From Oculina patagonica (Eukaryota): a stretch of 64,000 nt of DNA. A model generated the notes under the pieces. The model saw only the letters and a program-made list of their open reading frames with translations. It was not told the origin of the DNA and made no database searches. Position numbers and translations under genes: made by a program. Location: the NCBI RefSeq assembly GCF_052425735.1, contig NC_135764.1, positions 3,658,001 through 3,722,000 of the forward strand, given 5' to 3'. This document shows positions 29,697 to 48,741 of this stretch, piece after piece (within the stretch, counting starts at the first letter, position 1; the number at the start of each line of letters is the position of its first letter).

Positions 29697-30125
29697 AAAA
29701 AAAATTTGTAAAATGAAAGCAGCTGACAACTAAATGTGTATGTTATGTTATTGTTTTCCAATGAGGAGTGAGGGAGACTTGGCGTAATTAACAATATTGG
29801 GGGTATTAGAGAGTGGCAATAATAAGTGGGAGACAGTGGGAATTAAGCATGGGAGTGGTGGGGGTAAGAAAAACATTAACAGCTAAAATTTTCTGACACA
29901 AAGAAGCAATGTTAGTGATTGCGCAAATATAGAATTGTGAGGCCGTGGAGATCTGTTGAAATTCAAATTAATGCGATACAGTAGTGTAATCTCTAAGATA
30001 ATACATGATTGCGTGACGAACCCAAGCAACGGCTGCGAACTGAAACTATTAAACAAGAAGGCAGCCATCGTGAATTTGAACACAAAGAACTTACTATAGG
30101 TGTAGGAGCTTTGGTTTATCAAAAG

Positions 30126-30944
30126 ATGGCAAATTTGTTAAGCGATAACGCAGCACAAGGATACAGAGAAATCTCGCTTTCCGTGCAAAAGGTGGAAGGG
30201 GAAATGTTTGTTCAAACAGATATTTGTCCTCAAGCAGGAGACGCCATCTTGGATTTAGGTTGCGGTACAGGAGAGCTGTCTGCATATCTGGCTGAGCTTG
30301 TAGGACCCGAAGGAAAGGTTGTGGGTGTTGATCCTGACAAGGAACGAATTCTACTGGCTAGGCAAGCTCATGGTGAAATCAAGAATCTCTCATTTGTAGA
30401 AGGAAGCGCTTCAAACTTCCCAGGGATCGGCTCCGAGTCATACGATATTATATTCAGTAATCATGTCATTCACTGGATCCCTGACAAACAAGAAGTCTTC
30501 AAGAATATGTTTGGAAGTCTTAAAAGAGGTGGGAAAATAGCCGTTCAGTATGTGGATCATTCTTTCCCGTTTGAAGTACGCGCTTTCGAGAGTTTCAATC
30601 CTGAGAACTTACAACGCTTTCTTGACATGGTACATGAGGAAGAAAGGGCCAAGGTTGAGCAATACTGTACCTCTGCAGGATTTGACATCCTTAAGAGTTA
30701 TGACGTGTCCAGCACGCAAATGGTTTTCGAAAGCATCGAGTGTCTTATGAAATATCTTTGGTCGATTACACACGGTGTTTTTGATCTTAAGCTGGTAACG
30801 GAAAAGCGTTTGCAGAGTTATAGCTACCTTGATCCGTACTCAAGCCGAGATAGCAACCCTCGTTTCGACTTCAGAGGAATCGAAGAGGAATCGGGAATGT
30901 GTCGATTGATAGCTGTAAAGCAAGGAAAGAATGCTAGCCCATAA
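30126..30944 (+). CDS. Class I SAM-dependent small-molecule methyltransferase (UbiE/Tam/JHAMT-like fold), single exon, ~272 aa
   Basis: Motif I ILDLGCGTG, acidic motif VVGVD, YDIIFSNHVIHWI, LKRGG; first ATG in good context (aagATGg) at 30126. Confidence 0.88.
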   Translation: MANLLSDNAAQGYREISLSVQKVEGEMFVQTDICPQAGDAILDLGCGTGELSAYLAELVGPEGKVVGVDPDKERILLARQAHGEIKNLSFVEGSASNFPGIGSESYDIIFSNHVIHWIPDKQEVFKNMFGSLKRGGKIAVQYVDHSFPFEVRAFESFNPENLQRFLDMVHEEERAKVEQYCTSAGFDILKSYDVSSTQMVFESIECLMKYLWSITHGVFDLKLVTEKRLQSYSYLDPYSSRDSNPRFDFRGIEEESGMCRLIAVKQGKNASP

Positions 30945-38800: not shown

Positions 38801-41800
38801 CTAATCAATCTTCACAACTCTTTGCACGCTATGAATGGTCTTACAGCAAAACGTTATAAACTTCTGATTGTCGTTCAGAGGAGCGTCCGTACTGCGTTAT
38901 TTACGGTCTTATTTGCCTTCAAATTTTTTCCATTTAATTGTCACCTCTCTTAAACCTTACGTCAAACCTCCATTCACCCAATTAGCTTTATTAGAATATT
39001 CTACACTCTTAACGCTATTAAGTGCATCACTCCGCATTAATTATTCACGTGTTTAACACGTGATCTTGTTCTCTTACGCCTTTACATTTCTCTGTGCGAT
39101 TCAGCTCCTTAATTAAAGTTTGCTCGCATTGGTTTTACTCAACATTTCCCTCAGTCTTTCTCTACCAACCACTAATTCTCGAATCTATCTCTTTCTTTCT
39201 CTCTCTCTGTCATGGTGTAAAAGGTGATATGACAGTTATTTCCTGGCTTGGGTAATAAGAGATTTTATCACTGTTGTGGTCATAAGTAGAAGAAACATCA
39301 CTCGCAAATATGATGTCAAAATGGAAGCAAATTTCATCTCTTGTTCGCTCGAAAGGGTTGGTTCCCTTCTCGGTGAGTATGAGCACACCTCATTCCTCTC
39401 AAATATGCATAAGCAGATCATACACTTTGTCGTTTGCTTCATTATTTGGGCGTTTTTTGTGTGCATTTTTCGTCACAATTGTCCATTTCCCACTCAGAAT
39501 CTTTGTTCATCAGATTCAGAATCGGTTATTGGTAAAACAAAATTTCGCAGGCAAAATCTTGCAGTTTTTACCTTTTTTAGCTGACGTTAATTATGTATTT
39601 TCATCTATTGAGCTAATTAAGACAGTTATTATTAATTGCTGGAGACTACCACCTGTTAATTATCAACTGCGAAGAAAAGCAAGAGACGACAACAGGGAAA
39701 AAATAGAAACTGTTGAGTTATTTACATAACAATTAACACGCTTACTAGATAACAAATTCCTTTCAAAGAAAAAGCCTCCAAGCTTCTCTGTATTCTTTAC
39801 TGATCAAAGGCACGAACAGGCTTTCACTTTGCTAAATGGCGCGAGAATGTCTTCAAATAGTAAGCATACAGAATTATTTGCTTTGTTTGTTTATCAAGTT
39901 CCTTCCATGCATCGTTTGTTTATTCACTTGTTCATTCGTTGACTCTTTTATTTAACAATTCTAAATTCCAATTCGATCGAGAATCCGAGGGCCACAGGTT
40001 TGTCAGTTGCGACCCTTGTTAAACAAAGTCGATTTATTTATTTATTTTTATTCGTTAACTTAATTTTCGTTCATTTACTCCACTCGTTTTCAAATTTAAT
40101 AGTGTCATATTTTATACTGTTTTTCATTTCATTTATTATTCAGTCTTTTGTTTGTTCCCTCGGTCTCTCGGTCGCTCGCTCAATCCACTCGGTTAAACCT
40201 TTATCTTTTTTCATTCCGAGGTCTTTCTTCGACTTCCTTGTTTTTTTTTTTCAAAATATCTTCTTGCACTAGCAAGAAATATCTGTGTTCATTTCATCTC
40301 TTCCTGACTTTATATTCGGGCCTTTAAGTGTTTTTCTGCAACTTGGAATCATTTTAGCTCATTTAATTCCGGCTACCCAGTGCCTTGAGTTTCCGATTGG
40401 AAACGCGGTTGGTCTGAACCAAAAGGTCCTGGAACGAGGGTCGATAAACTTAGAGAAAGGAAAAAAATATTTAATTTTCTTTCAATTTTTTAAAAATGTT
40501 ATTCGTTACTGCTGTCTTCCTTTTCCGTTACAATTTCATCTTACACTAGCAGTTTAGGACCACCGCTACTTTTTGAAAAACTGTTTTCTTTGTTTGCCTC
40601 GACTTACGTCACTAGCTTAATTTTAAATTGCTTTTCGATGATTTTAGGAAAAAGGACAACTTTTTAGTTTTGAAAGCATATAAGATTGATTTTCCCTTTT
40701 TATGTCAGAGACTAAAGCCCGCAGTTTATCACAAAAAGTCTCGGTTTGCGGGCGTCTGTTTTGACTGCTAGGCTTTTTACTCTTTCAGTTATTCTAACAA
40801 AACAAAGCTTCAGATCTGCAATTGTCATTTCCAGAGTTTAATTAAGTGTTTACGGAAAGAAATGGGATACGGTGTCTTGAGAAAAAGGGATGTTTTTTGC
40901 ACCTGTGTAGCCAACCACTATTCTAATGAATTTTTCTAAGCAAGTGCCTTGAATATATTAGTTAATTTTTATCCAAAACAAATGCCTGACATATATTGTT
41001 TTTTTTTTATGCTCAATAAATTGCCCAGTTTTCACGGCTCAGATCTAATGTAAAATTTAAGTGCCATCGGGAAAAAAATCGAAATGGAGATTTTTAAGTC
41101 ATTAAAGCTTCCTCAATTAAAATGCATGATTGACTTAAAAGAGGGATTTTATAATTACTTCACACGTAGGAGATATAGAAAGGGGGTAAAGAAAATTCGT
41201 TTTTCAAAGCCATGTCATTTAGAGAACGGAAGATATCAGTCGTGTTATGAAATGTCCTACCGAGTAAGTATTATACATAGCTCGAGTGAAAAATCAGTCT
41301 TCAATTCTTTTAAGTGTAAATAAACTATTATTCTACCAGCGATGTGAAGCCCGGAAATCCACAGACATTATTTCCATATTGAATATGTTTTTTTAAGCGA
41401 AAGCTTTCAAATGTACATTGAATTATCGATCATCTTTCATTTCGGCGATTTTCATTCAAACGTACGCGGGCATTCGTTCAGAATCAAATTTACTTTGAGG
41501 CGTTGAGTAGTTTCGCTGGCGTTCTTGTGGGGAATGTTTAGATTTTCATTTATTCAGTAATGAATGTTTAGATTTCAAGTTGCAATTTTTTATGCAAACG
41601 TTTAGTGATCATTTGTGGAATAGTTGAGGAACAACCGTCAGCCCTATGATGTAATGAATCGCGAACGAATCCGTGGAGTTCGGCTTGTAAAGTAGAACGC
41701 TAATATGTTTATGGTATGGCCTTCGTAAACGCGTTATACCTGATATTTGACCGGGAAATAAGCGAGTTGTCGTATAAAACAGTATTCTTATGTTAACGTT

Positions 41801-42744
41801 TATTTTATTTTTTTTAGCTGCCGTCAAGTTACACTTTTACCCCAAACAAAGAAGAAGTTATCGGTTCCAGGTAGGTGGCTCGAAGGCAATTGTCGCTTTT
41901 TTTGTTTCCTTTTTTTGAACTGTAGACAGGGAAAAAGCACGAAATCCGAAACGCTCGCGAAATCCTTGAAATGCAAATCGCAGAGTACAAAGACGGCGGT
42001 ATAAAAACCATGCTTTCATTTAAAAGGCTTGAATTGACTCTAATCATGTTGTTCCTTTGTATCCTTGAAAATGTTTATCGTTAAAACCAAGTAGCTAACT
42101 AATTTTTTCCTTTGCATAAAAATATTTATTGTACAAATGTATTGGAACTTTAAAAACTCCCTCAAGCCGACGTCTAGCATGAAGGGTTCTAGCACACTAA
42201 ACAAGCCATTAGAGGAAAAACTGACATAGGACTTTTACTAAAAGCCAATGGTTTCCAAATACATTCAATGTTTAAGAGTGGTCAGAGTAATGATTTAAAA
42301 GGGAGAAAGCTTTATTACTTCCGTAAGAAACTGATAAACAGCCCCGAGGCAACCTAAAAAAATAATCGAGATAAAATTACTTTCCGCCAGACGTAAATCA
42401 ATCATATTTTCAAAATTAGTAGTCTAGAACCTCAGCGCAAAGTGCAATGGCGAAACGTATAAGCAAATTGAAAATCCAGCCACTTCGAGGCCACTGTATA
42501 TGGAAGGGCTCGTGTAATACTGAATAAAATCGAGTTTCTCGATTCGTTTTCTTGATACTCCAAAATTCAAATTTTGATTCCTGGTTTCTATGGGAACTGC
42601 TTGTTTGAAATGCATTGATAGAATTTTGATTGTATGTAATAAAGTCAAATACGTACAATTTGACAGAGAAAAGCTCAGACATGGAGCTGTTATTTCAAAA
42701 TAGAGTGAGGATTGTTAGAGTTTAGCGTGATTCAAACTTGGGAA

Positions 42745-42804
42745 CATTCTCGTCCCCAGAGGCCGCGACAGACCAGAAGGATCGCGGCCTCTGGGACGAG
42801 AATG
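42745..42804. mobile_element. 60-bp hairpin element with perfect 9-bp TSD
   Basis: cattctcgtccccagaggccgcga...tcgcggcctctgggacgagaatg flanked by acttgggaa on both sides. Confidence 0.85.
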
Positions 42805-43163
42805 ACTTGGGAATGAAACACCAATATAAAGCAAGGTACGCATGCGCAGGGTATCAGTAATAAATTACGAACAATCCACGTAGGCAAATATGGTAGACTA
42901 TTAAATACAAGGAGAAAATGTTTTTTATCTGGGCAAATAAAATGTTAACCTGAAAAATAACAGATGTTTCTGTTTGGCGCCATACCTTATACGTCACTTC
43001 CAAGAGAAACATTTTATTTTCGAGTCGAAAAACGCCATATTGATATCAGGAGCCCATTACTACTAATGGGCTCCTGTTGATATTTAGCATCACGGAAATA
43101 TCAGAGAAACTACATGAACCATTGTGTGTTATGTATTGCAAAACCATTCCATTCTATGCTTTG

Positions 43164-43498
43164 TTAGAGCAGTTTTCAATTGAGTGTCGTAAAACCAAAA
43201 CCAAAGTAATTACTCCGGCCAATCACAGAGGACACAGACAATCCAAATCAAAACTCCAAGCAAATACATGTAACTGGCACGAAGCGCGGGAAAACGTGCA
43301 CGAGCGAGTCACGATTGGTTTTGGTTTTAGTTCTGATTCGCCGAGAAAGTGGCGCGAGATTTTTAAGCCAATCACTAAGCGTAGTAATGCAAAACCAAAG
43401 CAAACACAATTAACTTTCGACACTCAAGTGAAAACCGCTCTAATGCAAAACCAAAGCAAACGCAATTTACTTTCGACACTCAAGTGAAAACCGCTCTA
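43164..43498. mobile_element. MITE (TAGAGC...GCTCTA) with a tandemly duplicated right end; related fragments at ~2140-2400, ~35690-35900, ~61215-61430
   Basis: TIR tagagcagttttcaattgagtgtcg / cgacactcaagtgaaaaccgctcta, the right end present twice; shared core ccaatca...gccaagcgcgggaaaac. Confidence 0.8.
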
Positions 43499-43533
43499 AG
43501 GATATAAGAAATTGCCACTTTTATTTATTTATT

Positions 43534-43720
43534 CCATGTCACGCCCGATACCATGCGAAGCCATGCATTGCCATGCCAACCATTACAACCATAGTAACCA
43601 CGCCATGCCGTAACAAACCATGCCATACTATGCCATGCATATTGCATCGCAAGCCATTCCATGTGAGGCAAGGCTATGCCATTCTATGCCAACCATATCA
43701 AGCCATGTCAAGTCATGCCA
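43534..43720. repeat. Degenerate (CCATG/CCATA)n pentanucleotide repeat
   Basis: Recurrent ccatg/gccat units at ~5-bp period. Confidence 0.7.
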
Positions 43721-43771
43721 AACTAAACGATTCGTGGCAAGCACTAATCTTTGGTATTTATTTTCCCCCAG

Positions 43772-46700
43772 ATTCCGGTTGCGTTACAGTACCACGTGTA
43801 ACAGTTACTATAGAGACTGGTCTGACGCCATAGACCCATCCGCACAGGGGGTCATCTCAAGATGGGACAAAGTCCTTTACTCTGTGGACTCCGTACACCG
43901 TCATATAAATGAAGAAGTCGGGCAGGTCGGTCCTTATTCACAGTTTATTCTTAAATATGTTTCAGTGACAAACTGGGTACTTTATACACCATATTCCAAA
44001 ATGGCAGAAAATACATTATTCTTTTGTCTACATGTTAATTGACCTAATAATTATGGCCCCGTTTTAAGCCAAAGATTCTTTTGAATTCTGCAGATGGGAT
44101 CGAGGCCAGAGGGTCAGTTAACATGAAGACAAAAGAATAATGTATTTTCCGCCATTTTGGAAAAAGGTATATGTTTCTACGGTACCCGAGTTTCTATTTC
44201 TGTGAAAAAACGAACGTCCATACTCTGTAATCTCCAGGTAGCCAATGAACATAAATGGCCAGTTCCCTCTATTTCACGCAGCTGCAGGGAATCAAGGTAG
44301 TCTCGGGCTCGTTTTGTTGTATACTACTATGATTCCCTGCAGCTAGGCGCGTCTCAATGAGGGGACCGCACATGCTGTTGTTCGCTCCGGCTTTAATCGA
44401 CAAAGAAGTTTAGAATACCGAATAACGTTAACCAACAGCCGTCGATATTTGTTTCCTCAGTTTCATTGGCATGCCTGTAAACTAGCCATCTCGAATGAGA
44501 TATGAAGCCTATGCATGACCACTGTTAACAAAATTTACACTTTATTTTTACATTTACATTCAGGTCTATCTAGAGAGAACACCAGGCTCCAATACAGGTT
44601 GCATCAAATGGCGGATCAATTTTGGCTGCTGTGGATTGCTGGTTGACGAGGTCACTATTCGCCTGTCATGCGTGGAAGAATATGGGGGAGAGGTGGTCGT
44701 AACACTAATGGGGACACCGGGAGAAAAACGAGTGAGGTACCCTATAGGTAAGAATCCCAACACTAATACACCAACTGAATCTTAGGGCACCTTCCATTTG
44801 TCAGAACTGGCCGGCCAGACCGGTATATTCGAGAAAAGAATTCCGTTGTTAGTCAGATTTGTCCTGTCAAATCAGTCAATACATAAATATCATAGACTGT
44901 TATTATGGAAAAATCTCGTGAAAAACAACCATTTCACATTAAAAATCACCGGAAAGGCCGGCCAGTTCTAACAAATGGAAAGTGCCAATAGTTGCTTAGA
45001 AAGCTGACTGATTACAATTTAATTCAAGGATTTGCAAGAGAAGAGATCAAAGCAAATTTCAAAGCCCTTTAAATTATCTTTTTTTCAGGAAGTGACTACG
45101 TCACATACAACGAGCTGGAGAATTCAACTGAGTTGACATTAACCGTTCATTTCGTTGGAGAGACTGGCCAGGTTACTCGGCTCTTTCCACAGAGTATATT
45201 GAGGGGCATGGGATATCCGCTTGACATTCAGGTTATACTGAAGGTAGGTGCTGGCCAGGTTACTCAGCTGAGGCGGATTTTGGCATGGTTACTCAATGAT
45301 GTTTTGATAAAGGCCATCATCACTATCTTTTTTATCACCATCACCGTTATTATCATCCGCCATTATGCTAACGTGGGCGCATGATCAGTCTATAAATCGA
45401 AATTTGCTTTAGATGAAGATAGCTATTTATAAATGGAATTTCTTTCTTATTTATAAATCAAGGAAAAAAGCAACGCTGATTTAACATTAAAGGAATATTA
45501 TGTCAATGCTAATATTTCGAAACGCACTGCCTTCTTCTTCAGGGTCTTATAAATAACGACTCTGGGTATTATTTAGTTGGATGTTGTTAGGGTTTTATCC
45601 TAATGACCATTTCTTGCCTTTCTTATATGTATCACTCATTTTTTCCCTAGCCGCCGCTTCAGTCTTTAGGCAGGCCAAGGATGCTTGTGGGGCTACTTTA
45701 CAGCAGTTCGCAAGAGATTGAAGTGGATGGAAGACATTACAAGCAAAACACTACAAATACAGGCCAAGGATTTCTTCATGTTCACCTTCTCAGGGCAATG
45801 GATTTACCAGGAGGAAAACATGGTTTACCAGAGACTTTCTCTAAGTGGTAAGAAAGTCATTTAGCTCGCGCGTAGATTTTGGCTTGCTGCGTCATTTATG
45901 TTGACGAGGTTTTATAAACTTCAGAGTCAACGTTTTGGGGTGAATATCAGCATATGAGTTATTCTAATAGACCTTTTTCACTTGGGCGTTTTGTTGCCCC
46001 ATTACAGACCATGTGATGATACTCTTGAGAATTCTTGCTTTCAAATTTTCAAATAGTCGCGTGTACATGAATGAATAAATTTTATGTGGATAAAAGGAAA
46101 ATTCTCTAGAGAACATCACGTGGTCTGTAATGGGAAAACAAACCGCCCAAGCGAAAAAGGTCTATAATTGATCTCCATACTTATTGTGTAGAGCTAATTA
46201 GCATTGGGAGAAACAGGAGTGATGGGCTACTGCGAAAAGTTAGTCCTGCAGTTCAGTGAATGAATGAATGAATAAATAAATGAACTTTATTTAAGTGTTA
46301 TAGTTTTTAGCTGTTAGGCTAACTGGGAACACTAAAATAATTTTAAAATTATAGGTTTGCTTGTGACGCAAGTCCCGAGTCACGCTCTTAGTGTGAGGGG
46401 TCTCAGGTGTTACTTGTGCCTAGTATGCTTTCCAGGATGGGGTGGGGGGGGGGGGGGGTGGGTACTTAACAACGTTTTATACGGGGAGGCTCCACTTTGA
46501 GTTTCAAACATTAACCCTTTTATATACCATTTTTGGCAGAAAAGTACCTTCTACTGAAAATGGTACCCCTTACGGGCGAAGCCTATACAACAATAAGAGA
46601 TAACTTTTACAAAAAATACAGCCTATCATCTTAAATGTCAGCCGGCTACCAGTGCCTGACTTGATTTTAGAATTAATGAATTCTTCCGATTATTTTGTGA

Positions 46701-48741
46701 CCATGCAATTGATTAAATTTATATCATCTTGTTTTGATTTACGTAACAAAATACTATCAATGTAATTAATTTTATATGTAATCATTTTGTTTTGTTTTTT
46801 ACTATGTTATTATTTTATTATTTTTATTATTATTATTACTTAATAAGTTTACGCTTTTGCAATATTGTAACAAATTTACAGTCATGCAAATAAAGCTTGT
46901 TGTTGTTGTTGTTGTCCATATAGGGAGTACCACCCAGGTCTACTCTTCATACCATTCAAAACAGTAATAGAAAAACTAAAAACAATGAAAAGCAAAATAA
47001 TAAACCCATTTTCATCTTTCATTTTTTTCCCAGTTATCTTTTACCTGATGCTAAGAAGTCAACCAAGTGTAGAACAAAGTCAAGAAAGGGCAAAGACCCA
47101 TTGTGGAACGAGGAATTTCTAATAGTTGGCGTTAATTTTCACGATGTGAAACGTAGAGCTCTGGAAATCTGCATTGCCGACAGCCATACGTCAGTCGGAA
47201 AGAAGGCGAAGTTCCTCGGAGGTCTTCGGCTTAGTCTCGGTTATAAAGCAGTCGTAGCTGCGCAAACCAAACAAGTCAGTAACGTGCTTCGGCTTCTTAA
47301 AGGAAAGGGAGGGGTGAGTGGGGGAAGGAACATTGAAACAGAGGGGACGAGAGAGAGGAAGGTGTCTTTCAGTGACAAAGACACTGTGATAGCAAATGTG
47401 AATTCGAGCTTCGGTAAATGGAAGAGAGCGAGTGGAAAATCTGTGGCAAAGGATAATACGGACAGCGACACCAAAGCTGAGATTGACGCAGGAACCGCAG
47501 GTGCACAGGCAAATAACAATACAGGAAATGTGAAAATCACTGTCGATGTAACAAAGCCGGAAATTGTTGAGAATGAACAGCAGAGTGCTTCTTCGACTAG
47601 CACTGAGGACATGTCAGCGGCCTGTGACTCAGCCCCAGATCCCACTGCGAATTCAGAGCAGGAATTGGGTACAAGCCCCGATAAAGACAACGCGGACAAG
47701 CGTTCACCCGAAGAGCGACTATTTCATTCAGTGCTGACCTCAATAAAGCAACTGGAAATCGCAACTCGTTACAGCGTGACGCTTGAGAGCAGCGAAGATA
47801 AAGAACTCGAACTCTTTAAAGAACATGAGAAAGAAGACGATCGTAGAGAAGTTACCAATGGTCCTGACAATGAAGATGCAAAGAGAGACGAGAAACAAGA
47901 ATCCGGTGAAAATTCCCCTCGTAATATTGTAAACGACGCAAAGCAAGAAGAAAATGGTTTCAAGGAGACTGAAACTCCGCGGAAAGGTGATCTAACCGAA
48001 GACAAATTCGTATTACATGACAACAACAACAAAGTAAACGAGATCAACGAAAAGCATTCTCAAAATGAAGATGACCTAGAGAAGCATGGCGTAAAGGAGG
48101 TTGAAATTCAAATAAATGGCAATCTAACCGATGAGCGAATCATATTAAATGACATAAAGGGAACCGAAGTGATCTCAAATGTCGAGGTACACGAAAATCC
48201 GCCGGATTCTTCCGAAAATTGCCGAACGGAACACGACAAAAACACAGACAAGCAAAATGGCGACGAAACTTGCACCAAAGTTGAGGAGGCTATTGAGGAA
48301 GAGAAGTCAACAAAGAAAGAAATCTCGCTGCAGCTGAGTTCTGCTGTGACAGAGACGCGTGGATCAGTGAAAATGGTTGAAGGAAAGATTCGTAGTGTTT
48401 CTGCCCCTCCCCGTCAAGAAATTAAAGTGGACCGTCTACAAATCGAGCATAACAAAGTTCACGGGGCATCGGAGAAGACATCTACTGACTCAAATGAAAT
48501 GAAGCGCAGCCCGTCATTCACTTTTAAAGACTTAGGGAAGAAACTAAACTTTCGAGGAAGAAGCAAATCAGAAAGCGACAAGACTGGGTCGGAGGCTGCA
48601 GGCTTAGCGACAAATGCAAACAAGGTGATGTTAGACGCTGAAGGGCTTGAAATAACACAATGGACACTTGTGGTTGATCGGCCAAAACAATGGCATTACT
48701 GCTGGCACATACTGAGACCTGAAATGACCATCTTACACTAG
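43772..48741 (+). CDS. PAW-domain + synaptotagmin-like C2-domain protein (~806 aa); exons 43772-43925, 44564-44747, 45089-45243, 45651-45847, 47034-48741; first coding exon uncertain (33461-33483 or 42813-42835)
   Basis: Five phase-compatible AG/GT exons with no stops. The first three read FRLRYS...WDKVLYSVDSVHRH...VYLERTPGSNTGCIKWRINFGCCGLLVDEVTIRL...TELTLTV...TRLFPQS...LDIQVILK, colinear with the NGLY1 PAW domain. The last two read GFLHVHLLRAMDLP...FSKCYLLPDAKKSTKCRTK...DPLWNEEF...RALEICIAD...FLGGLRLSLG, i.e. an Slp-type C2B domain. Confidence 0.85.
43984..44172. mobile_element. MITE with terminal inverted repeats
   Basis: ccatattccaaaatggcagaaaatacattattctttt ... aaaagaataatgtattttccgccattttggaa. 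Confidence 0.75.
44785..44987. mobile_element. Harbinger-like MITE
   Basis: ggcaccttccatttgtcagaactggccggcc ... ggccggccagttctaacaaatggaaagtgcc. Confidence 0.75.
45967..46165. mobile_element. MITE with ~50-bp terminal inverted repeats
   Basis: atagacctttttcacttgggcg...cccattacagacca / tggtctgtaatggg...cgcccaagcgaaaaaggtctat. Confidence 0.8.

Follow-up and report, generated by a model that had tools for sequence, protein, structure and literature searches.

A PAW domain of the NGLY1 type joined to a synaptotagmin-like C2 domain in a coral gene without a peptide-N-glycanase core

NGLY1, the cytosolic PNGase, is a human disease gene, and the PAW domain is its least understood part. In a 64,000-nucleotide stretch of the Oculina patagonica genome (contig NC_135764.1, positions 3,658,001 to 3,722,000; hereafter the window), an initial annotation had placed a PAW domain directly before a synaptotagmin-like C2 domain, with no catalytic core. 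The locus raises the question of whether such a protein is made, where it came from and what a PAW domain may do apart from the enzyme. The gene product is a non-enzymatic paralogue of the glycan-binding module of NGLY1. It consists of an N-terminal PAW domain that lacks the first canonical strand, about 10 conserved linking residues and a single C2 domain of the Slp C2B type that carries an acidic disordered insert.

The gene has seven exons on the + strand (41252-48741), and every internal intron is GT-AG. Joining 41252-41263, 41818-41870, 43772-43925, 44564-44747, 45089-45243, 45651-45847 and 47034-48741 gives an open frame of 2463 nt, and the spliced translation is identical to an 820-residue NCBI protein (P0001), isoform X2 of LOC144660155, named 'uncharacterized protein' in Oculina patagonica. 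The small PAW exons are thus joined in frame to the exons encoding the C2 domain, as had been proposed. The exons were found at the proposed positions, except for the end of the second PAW exon, which is at 44747 (donor ATAG/gtaaga) and not at an earlier GT. There are two alternative first coding exons. The one used in isoform X2 (41252..41263, +) encodes MSYR, is followed by a GT donor and was the sole match in the window to the back-translated pattern. The other (39310..39372, +) encodes a basic N-terminus of 21 residues that starts MMSKWKQISS and also has a GT donor; joined to 41818 it gives an 837-residue isoform with the frame open. The same N-terminal peptide is conserved in the orthologues of Stylophora, Montipora and Desmophyllum. 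One contig starts at 41724.

Merged gene models do occur, and the Desmophyllum model of the orthologue (P0053) is frameshifted inside the C2 domain. One possibility considered was a false merger in which the PAW and C2 exons come from two adjacent genes or from a decaying copy of NGLY1. However, assembled contigs without introns link PAW and C2 exons in four runs from four studies. In two of the runs, a single contig extends from exon A through exon E with the introns removed (X1 record 1 and X7 record 16), and others cover the spliced exons in part (X10 records 5 and 6, X2 record 9). The junctions 45243->45651 and 45847->47034 are both present, the first being the junction proposed for verification. 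The RNA nature of these runs is a guess. Per exon, the contigs diverge from the window by about 0-6% and may therefore belong to other strains or species; even so, the introns are removed exactly, which shows that splicing takes place. The gene is expressed. Moreover, the frame is open over the whole coding sequence and the domain order is identical in seven other species of two phyla. Taken together, a merging artefact is extremely improbable.

The PAW domain is encoded by four exons. The first (41818..41870, +; covered by contig X10 record 5) encodes LPSSYTFTPNKEEVIGS and ends in a split Arg codon, and its counterpart in NGLY1 is the exon encoding HEPYIYKPTDEEIKEK followed by a split Arg codon. 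The next three match consecutive parts of the Pfam PAW profile: exon A (43772..43925, +) corresponds to profile positions 39-78 and ends in phase 0 directly before VYLER, exon B (44564..44747, +) corresponds to positions 84-137 and ends in phase 1 within a Gly codon, and exon C (45089..45243, +) corresponds to positions 147-196 and its phase-0 end coincides with the end of NGLY1 proteins. The boundary between the PAW and C2 domains therefore falls at a phase-0 intron, as first described. In the 820-residue protein, residues 8-184 match positions 24-196 of the 197 in PF04721 with 78.9 bits, well above the cut-off of 31.4, and the PAW domains of the orthologues score 51-77 bits. The family profile matches mouse PNGase's C-terminal domain (2G9F, 2G9G, 2I74) with E-values of about 3e-20. 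The AF2 model of the domain has a pLDDT of about 95, and Foldseek superimposed it on the β-sandwich of 2G9G and 2G9F with a target TM of 0.86-0.90 and an rmsd of 1.9-2.1 Å over 183-187 columns at 27-28% identity. Both the profile search and the fold comparison thus confirm the identity of the domain, and the alignments originally quoted from NGLY1 (VYLER.. with VYLAR.., TRLFPQS with TQLFRQS) were reproduced.

The catalytic part of NGLY1 is absent. Neither the Transglut_core/Rad4 domain, the core with the Cys-His-Asp triad, nor a PUB domain was detected in the 820-residue protein. The core was also not found in the window, and the PUB matches of the genome lie on other contigs. When Nematostella NGLY1 was compared with the window by tblastn, the last PAW exon was the sole match. 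Both searches agree with the initial annotation that the core is missing, and no catalytic exons lie upstream. The PNGase genes of this genome that do bear the core are located on another contig (C11) at approximately 20.83, 20.85 and 20.93 Mb. The three PAW introns, in the Arg codon, in phase 0 and in the phase-1 Gly codon, have the same position and phase as those of the coral's own NGLY1 (locus L013). Because these introns are common to both genes, an origin at the DNA level, which had been put forward as exon shuffling, is supported.

The ligand of the PAW domain is less easily read from this homology. As had been noticed, HINEEV stands in place of KVExDW and GQVTR in place of AWQHxQ. Transglutaminase-linked PAW domains share 40 columns with a conservation of 85% or more, and just 6 of these are preserved in at least eight of ten PAW-C2 proteins. 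None of the members has retained the first strand (GRxSGSxxWRxxRGE), KxExDW or WQHxQxFRQ, and what stands in their place is not the same in sponges as in cnidarians. The specificity of the domain may have changed relative to NGLY1, on the basis of the loss of conserved motifs rather than of mapped contacts with mannopentaose. An invariant R-x-R-x-R-Y-S strand was considered as a basic ladder specific to the PAW-C2 proteins and was rejected, as it is also present in the PAW domain of Nematostella NGLY1. In the MAFFT alignment, the W-K of the MSKWK.. peptide pairs with the canonical W-R of the first PAW strand. For now, this peptide is not taken as a stand-in for the missing strand because AF2 predicts disorder for it (in the Stylophora orthologue, residues 1-14 have a pLDDT below 50).

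These data bear on the proposal that the PAW domain is still a high-mannose lectin, tethered to membranes by the C2 domain, that senses N-glycans exposed to the cytosol on ERAD substrates or ruptured vesicles. High-mannose glycans are ligands of the PAW domain of NGLY1 (Zhou et al. 2006, cited in PMC9102325), the fold of the PAW-C2 domain remains intact, with strong constraint acting on it from before the separation of sponges and cnidarians onwards, and elsewhere PAW has been recombined with adaptor-type domains, namely the ankyrin repeats of a Saccoglossus protein and the autophagy-receptor zinc finger of a krill protein that has two PAW domains. However, all members have lost both Trp motifs (ExDW and WQH) and the first strand, few of the NGLY1-conserved columns persist, and the residues that took their place are not the same in the two phyla; the hemichordate and krill domains, by contrast, keep WQHxQLFRQ. 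Retention of the original lectin function is considered unlikely.

The C2 domain is distributed over the last two exons. The linker and the first strands are encoded by 45651..45847 (+), an exon included in the spliced contigs. Strands β3-β7, with a basic β3-β4 stretch and a conserved helix past β7, are encoded by 47034..47298 (+). The insert (47299..48588, +; residues ~341-770) is an acidic, Ser/Thr-rich disordered region of about 430 residues in the β7-β8 loop. A C-terminal piece (48589..48741, +) with the motif GLEITQW...WHYCWHILR completes the domain with two helices and strand β8 and is followed by the stop codon. Pfam C2 (PF00168) matches residues 228-322 with 39.8 bits, above the cut-off of 22, and the PDB profile matches, with E-values down to 5e-24, include Syt7, rabphilin and Doc2. 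In the AF2 model, the domain has a pLDDT of about 90. Residues 772-820 reach 93-96, and the strand at 806-811 completes the domain, so that profile and model together describe an eight-stranded synaptotagmin-type sandwich with its last strand included. The pTM is 0.60, a hint that the PAW and C2 domains may pack rigidly against each other.

When the insert was removed, the C2 profile matched the C-terminal C2 domain of SYTL5-like proteins over HMM positions 4-167 with 80-100 bits; Sytl5 of rat and mouse and an Slp5-like protein of Saccoglossus were among the matches. The matched domain was the last C2 of its own protein in 44 of the 45 best matches, and the C-terminal piece aligned with the C-terminus of the SYTL5-like C2B. 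The original description of the domain as synaptotagmin-like holds. Searches for features in a protein atlas returned only generic C2 clusters with scores below 0.85. The closest structures found by Foldseek were the C2B domains of Doc2B and rabphilin, including complexes of rabphilin C2B with SNAP25.

Projection on C2 sequences of the Ca2+-binding type showed that the five ligand positions are occupied by G, E, D, H and K in the coral protein. Since just one Asp and one Glu remain of the five acidic ligands of loops 1 and 3, Ca2+-regulated membrane binding is unlikely, to judge from these residues. The missing ligands, together with the loss of the NGLY1 motifs from the PAW domain, weaken the case for a lectin adaptor. 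Within the β3-β4 stretch, 8 of 21 residues are K/R, and the C2 domain has a pI of about 10 in its N-terminal part. This basic patch is found in cnidarians and is absent from the sponge orthologues, so that lipid docking may not be a common property of the family. The insert has a pI of 4.97 and a pLDDT below 50 over residues 357-763; its length varies between species from about 150 to 700 residues, and its conservation among anthozoans is limited to a few short blocks.

Another explanation is that the C2 domain binds proteins instead of lipids, and that the gene product acts in trafficking or signalling as a soluble scaffold whose two domains both have protein partners. Rabphilin C2B binds SNAP25, and the presence of these complexes among the closest solved structures is consistent with such a role, as are the missing Ca2+ ligands and the lack of conservation of the polybasic patch in sponges. 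The short conserved blocks in the long insert are what would be expected of linear motifs. However, cnidarians keep the strongly basic β3-β4 stretch, and stretches of this type bind phosphoinositides in the related C2 domains of synaptotagmin and rabphilin. This explanation is regarded as improbable, to about the same degree as a retained high-mannose lectin.

The mechanism that we favor, tentatively and at clearly less than even odds, is that of a peripheral cytosolic adaptor that acts independently of Ca2+. The C2 domain would dock on acidic membranes through the basic β3-β4 patch in cnidarians, or on some protein partner. The PAW domain would contribute another binding surface with a specificity unlike that of the high-mannose site of NGLY1, and the variable insert may serve as a regulatory or scaffolding region. 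As a whole, this account, from the non-enzymatic paralogue to its proposed role, is the best explanation of the data, with the chances about evenly balanced. The architecture itself and its history are held with very high confidence.

Proteins with both PAW and C2 domains are also present in Stylophora, Montipora, Nematostella, the jellyfish Sanderia and the demosponges Amphimedon and Ephydatia. The architecture is not a cnidarian novelty; demosponges also carry it. Among the best 150 of 725 exhaustive HMMER matches, only cnidarian, sponge and metatranscriptome proteins had both domains and none was bilaterian. A search of AFDB clusters gave no further lineage, returning NGLY1 PAW proteins and C2 proteins separately and one partial entry with a C2 of the coral type. 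No mention of the architecture or its loci was found in the literature searched. The PAW domains of the PAW-C2 proteins form one branch of the tree with support of 95/89, and the order within the branch matches the species tree. This single supported branch points to one origin before sponges and cnidarians parted. Tree and gene structure together show that the 3' PAW exons of NGLY1 were joined once to a C2B-type unit before that split, and the locus is thus an old animal gene for an uncharacterised protein.

A bolder suggestion is that of a pre-bilaterian cytosolic sensor in which a re-tuned PAW lectin, kept at membranes by an Slp-type C2 domain, reads luminal glycans, or some other marker, exposed on damaged or remodelled endomembranes. 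If so, the same task would be performed in bilaterians by the unrelated galectins and FBXO27, which could explain the apparent loss of PAW-C2 there. This suggestion is speculative and quite improbable. More generally, a PAW domain that has persisted apart from the enzyme for over half a billion years, coupled to a C2 of a vesicle-docking type, may be viewed as a natural experiment, and knowledge of its ligand would show what the fold is capable of beyond aiding deglycosylation. In early-branching animals, reef corals among them, the protein is a candidate component of membrane trafficking or quality control.

Among known systems, the PAW domain of the protein is a β-sandwich homologous to the C-terminal PAW domain of NGLY1, with which it has three introns in common. 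However, NGLY1 has a PUB domain and a transglutaminase core, while the PAW-C2 protein is without both and has a C2 domain added where NGLY1 ends. As a practical matter, the Stylophora and Desmophyllum orthologues are misannotated: the name 'peptide-N-glycanase' is misleading because they have no PUB domain or core, lack the PAW motifs and carry a C2 domain after PAW. The C2 domain resembles the C2B of Slp/SYTL proteins such as SYTL5 over its whole length, including the C-terminal DWMDSxGxE..W..ML..P..W...LR. In contrast to the tandem C2A-C2B and N-terminal Rab-binding SHD/FYVE_2 domain of these proteins, the PAW-C2 protein has a single C2, no FYVE_2 and a disordered insert of 150-700 residues in the β7-β8 loop. 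Other non-catalytic PAW domains occur in the 'other worm proteins' of C. elegans, a Saccoglossus protein with two PAW domains and ankyrin repeats, a Ptychodera protein with PAW only and the krill protein with a zinc finger and two PAW domains. The tree places them with the transglutaminase-linked domains, and none bears a C2; the Saccoglossus and krill domains retain WQHxQLFRQ and the PAW-C2 members do not. FBXO2, FBXO6 and FBXO27 (FBA) and the galectins have folds unrelated to that of the PAW-C2 protein, which has no F-box and for which glycan binding is hypothetical. The likeness to them would be functional only, if the lectin reading is right: according to PMC9102325 and general background, they too combine cytosolic sugar binding with a targeting module.

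The PAW-C2 gene lies on the + strand of the window (G000:C7:3658001-3722000 of the 529-Mb coral genome). A four-codon first exon at 41252-41263 is followed by small GT-AG exons at 41818-41870, 43772-43925, 44564-44747, 45089-45243 and 45651-45847; the final exon, at 47034-48741, is long. The three exons from 43772 to 45243 (A, B and C) encode PAW and the final two (D and E) encode C2. With 41252-41263 included, the translation of the 2463-nt spliced frame is exactly that of P0001, the 820-aa NCBI model LOC144660155 isoform X2. The exon layout of the initial annotation held everywhere save at one donor; because the frame must be kept, the second PAW exon must stop at 44747 (ATAG|gtaaga). A candidate second first exon on the + strand (39310-39372) encodes a 21-residue basic N-terminus kept in Stylophora, Montipora and Desmophyllum, and its use gives an open frame of 837 aa. 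The intron between 41818-41870 and 43772-43925 carries an interspersed repeat of ~285-335 bp (43163-43499), probably a SINE- or MITE-like element of recent origin. A first look gave more than 2600 candidate genome copies, the 40 scored copies were 92-95% identical, and the summed contig depth over the repeat was at least 1000 times that of the gene exons in the runs aligned to the gene. A single-exon ORF of 311 aa on the + strand (30009-30944), ~8 kb upstream of the gene, encodes a SAM-dependent methyltransferase domain of class I, which scored 88 bits with Methyltransf_31.

Logan contigs from four runs in four studies were aligned to window positions 41700-47600. Consecutive positions of one contig from run X1 (record 1, 1628 nt) mapped to exons A, B, C, D and E with all introns absent, and the same was true of a 1099-nt contig from run X7 (record 16). 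Records 5 and 6 of run X10 and record 9 of run X2 gave the same joints in pieces, including 41866->43768. The RNA nature of the runs is a guess, and intron-less contigs jointed at GT-AG sites match spliced mRNA; the PAW and C2 exons therefore share one transcript, as initially proposed. The gene is expressed, and a gene-model artefact is essentially excluded. In each exon the contigs were 0-6% divergent from the window sequence, and their source may therefore be other strains or closely related species. Record 5 of X10 was unspliced at 41724-41866: it starts 94 nt upstream of the acceptor of exon 2 and continues into that exon, which could reflect intron retention or a third site of transcription initiation.

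The identity of both domains, originally recognized from the sequence alone, was borne out by profile and structure searches. Searched singly, the three PAW exons matched collinear parts of Pfam PAW. Residues 8-184 of P0001 matched PAW with 78.9 bits (cut-off 31.4) and residues 228-322 matched C2 with 39.8 bits (cut-off 22). A profile of the PAW region of the PAW-C2 proteins retrieved the mouse PNGase C-terminal domain structures with E ~3e-20. The full-length protein was modelled with AlphaFold2 from a 71-row alignment, giving a pLDDT of ~95 at residues 10-190, ~90 at 196-340, <50 at 357-763 and 93-96 at 772-820, a segment modelled with two helices and a strand (806-811). The top Foldseek matches in the PDB were the NGLY1-type structures 2G9G and 2G9F (target TM 0.86-0.90, rmsd ~2 Å, 27-28% identity), followed by the C2 domains of Doc2B, rabphilin, RIM and synaptotagmin. 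The high-pLDDT blocks on either side of 357-763 indicate a split C2 domain, in which strands 1-7 are followed by a disordered acidic insert of ~430 residues (pI 4.97) and then by the piece that closes the sandwich. Just a few short blocks of the insert are conserved in anthozoans.

The gene has no PNGase catalytic core, as had been claimed: a tblastn search of the window with Nematostella NGLY1 matched the last PAW exon only. Genome-wide, contigs C11 and C12 hold the Transglut_core matches, and C11 also has the strongest PUB match. The PNGase genes on C11 are locally triplicated. The canonical NGLY1 gene (C11:20.826-20.836 Mb, 20826000-20836000) encodes a thioredoxin-like piece, PUB, a transglutaminase core and PAW, and two copies with transglutaminase core and PAW lie ~20 kb (G000:C11:20845000-20856000) and ~90 kb (G000:C11:20924000-20931000) from it, with no PUB match beside either. 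The PAW-C2 gene is thus a non-enzymatic paralogue distinct from them.

Word-based and exhaustive protein searches for both Pfam domains recovered PAW-C2 proteins from the stony corals Stylophora pistillata (798 aa) and Montipora foliosa (1109 aa), the sea anemone Nematostella vectensis (649 aa), the scyphozoan Sanderia malayensis (677 aa) and the demosponges Amphimedon queenslandica (533 aa) and Ephydatia muelleri (two neighbouring genes). Both domains also occur in one metatranscriptome protein, and a partial one was found in Geodia; the Desmophyllum model is frameshifted within C2. The split C2 and the C-terminal ...W.YCWH.LR piece are common to all PAW-C2 proteins found. A maximum-likelihood tree built from 31 PAW domains placed all ten PAW-C2 sequences together on one side of a single branch (support 95/89), sponges and cnidarians being apart in an order that matches the species tree; across that branch lay the PAW domains of transglutaminase-linked, hemichordate and krill proteins. 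Furthermore, the three PAW introns (inside an Arg codon, phase 0 before VYL, and inside a Gly codon) have the same positions and phases in the PAW-C2 gene and the coral's canonical NGLY1, and C2 starts after the phase-0 intron predicted at the boundary, located where NGLY1 proteins stop. The architecture is ancient, and its simplest history is a single event, earlier than the divergence of sponges and cnidarians, that joined the 3' exons of NGLY1 to a C2 unit at the DNA level. No bilaterian protein with both domains was present among the 150 best matches of the exhaustive search, which suggests later loss in bilaterians. A single 3-kb Logan contig from an Amphimedon-like sponge carries both the PAW-C2 mRNA and, tail to tail with it, a carnosine-N-methyltransferase-like gene, which suggests that their 3' ends overlap or that the assembly is chimeric.

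Of 40 alignment columns at least 85% identical across 18 transglutaminase-linked PAW domains, just 6 are retained in at least eight of the ten PAW-C2 proteins. The entire first strand motif of NGLY1, GRxSGSxxWRxxRGE, is missing. The long-isoform N-terminal peptide was considered as its substitute and rejected, being predicted by AlphaFold2 to be disordered. The alignment reproduced the motif changes noted initially: KxExDW is H-I-N-E-E-V in the coral protein, and WQHxQxFRQ is Q-V-T-R-L-F-P-Q, four to five residues shorter. The substitutes at the lost motifs are not the same in sponges and cnidarians. Because conserved polar and aromatic residues alternate along the strands of the two lost motifs, these residues may line the sugar-binding face of NGLY1. 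The membrane-tethered lectin that the initial annotation envisaged is a less probable reading of the protein than the adaptor favoured below, and a scaffold that binds proteins alone has a similar probability.

Other PAW proteins also occur outside the enzyme. A partial krill protein (P0154, Meganyctiphanes norvegica, 432 aa) has a zinc finger of autophagy-receptor type (Zn-C2H2_12) and then two PAW domains, both of which keep WQHxQLFRQ; its sequence is consistent with cytosolic glycan recognition by another non-enzymatic architecture. Saccoglossus kowalevskii proteins P0104 and P0205 combine two PAW domains with ankyrin repeats, and P0152 of Ptychodera flava has a single PAW with ~200 further residues, all without a PNGase core.

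With the insert removed, positions 4-167 of the 170-position C2 profile matched the C-terminal C2 of synaptotagmin-like proteins with 80-100 bits, and 44 of the 45 best matches were the last C2 of their protein. At the five aspartate positions of Ca2+-binding-type C2 domains (Syt7 alignment), the coral residues are G, E, D, H and K. The cnidarian beta3-beta4 stretch, with 8 K/R among 21 residues, is very basic, and the pI of the N-terminal C2 part is ~10; the sponge stretch is not basic. A Ca2+-independent cytosolic adaptor is tentatively favoured. The Slp-type C2 would dock either on a partner or, in cnidarians, on acidic membranes, PAW would give a second binding surface of changed specificity, and the disordered insert might regulate.

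In the literature searched, no paper treats a PAW and a C2 domain together, in keeping with the novelty first suggested; papers on PAW do not deal with these proteins, and none cites four of the locus names. Databases name the PAW-C2 proteins 'uncharacterized', 'C2 domain-containing' or, wrongly, 'peptide-N-glycanase'. PAW-C2 is an undescribed, conserved joining of two known domains. Among the synaptotagmin-like matches to its C2, those with names are Sytl5 of rat and mouse and an Slp5-like protein of Saccoglossus, and the C-terminal signature DWMDSxGxE..W..ML..P..W...LR is common to PAW-C2 and the synaptotagmin-like C2 domains.
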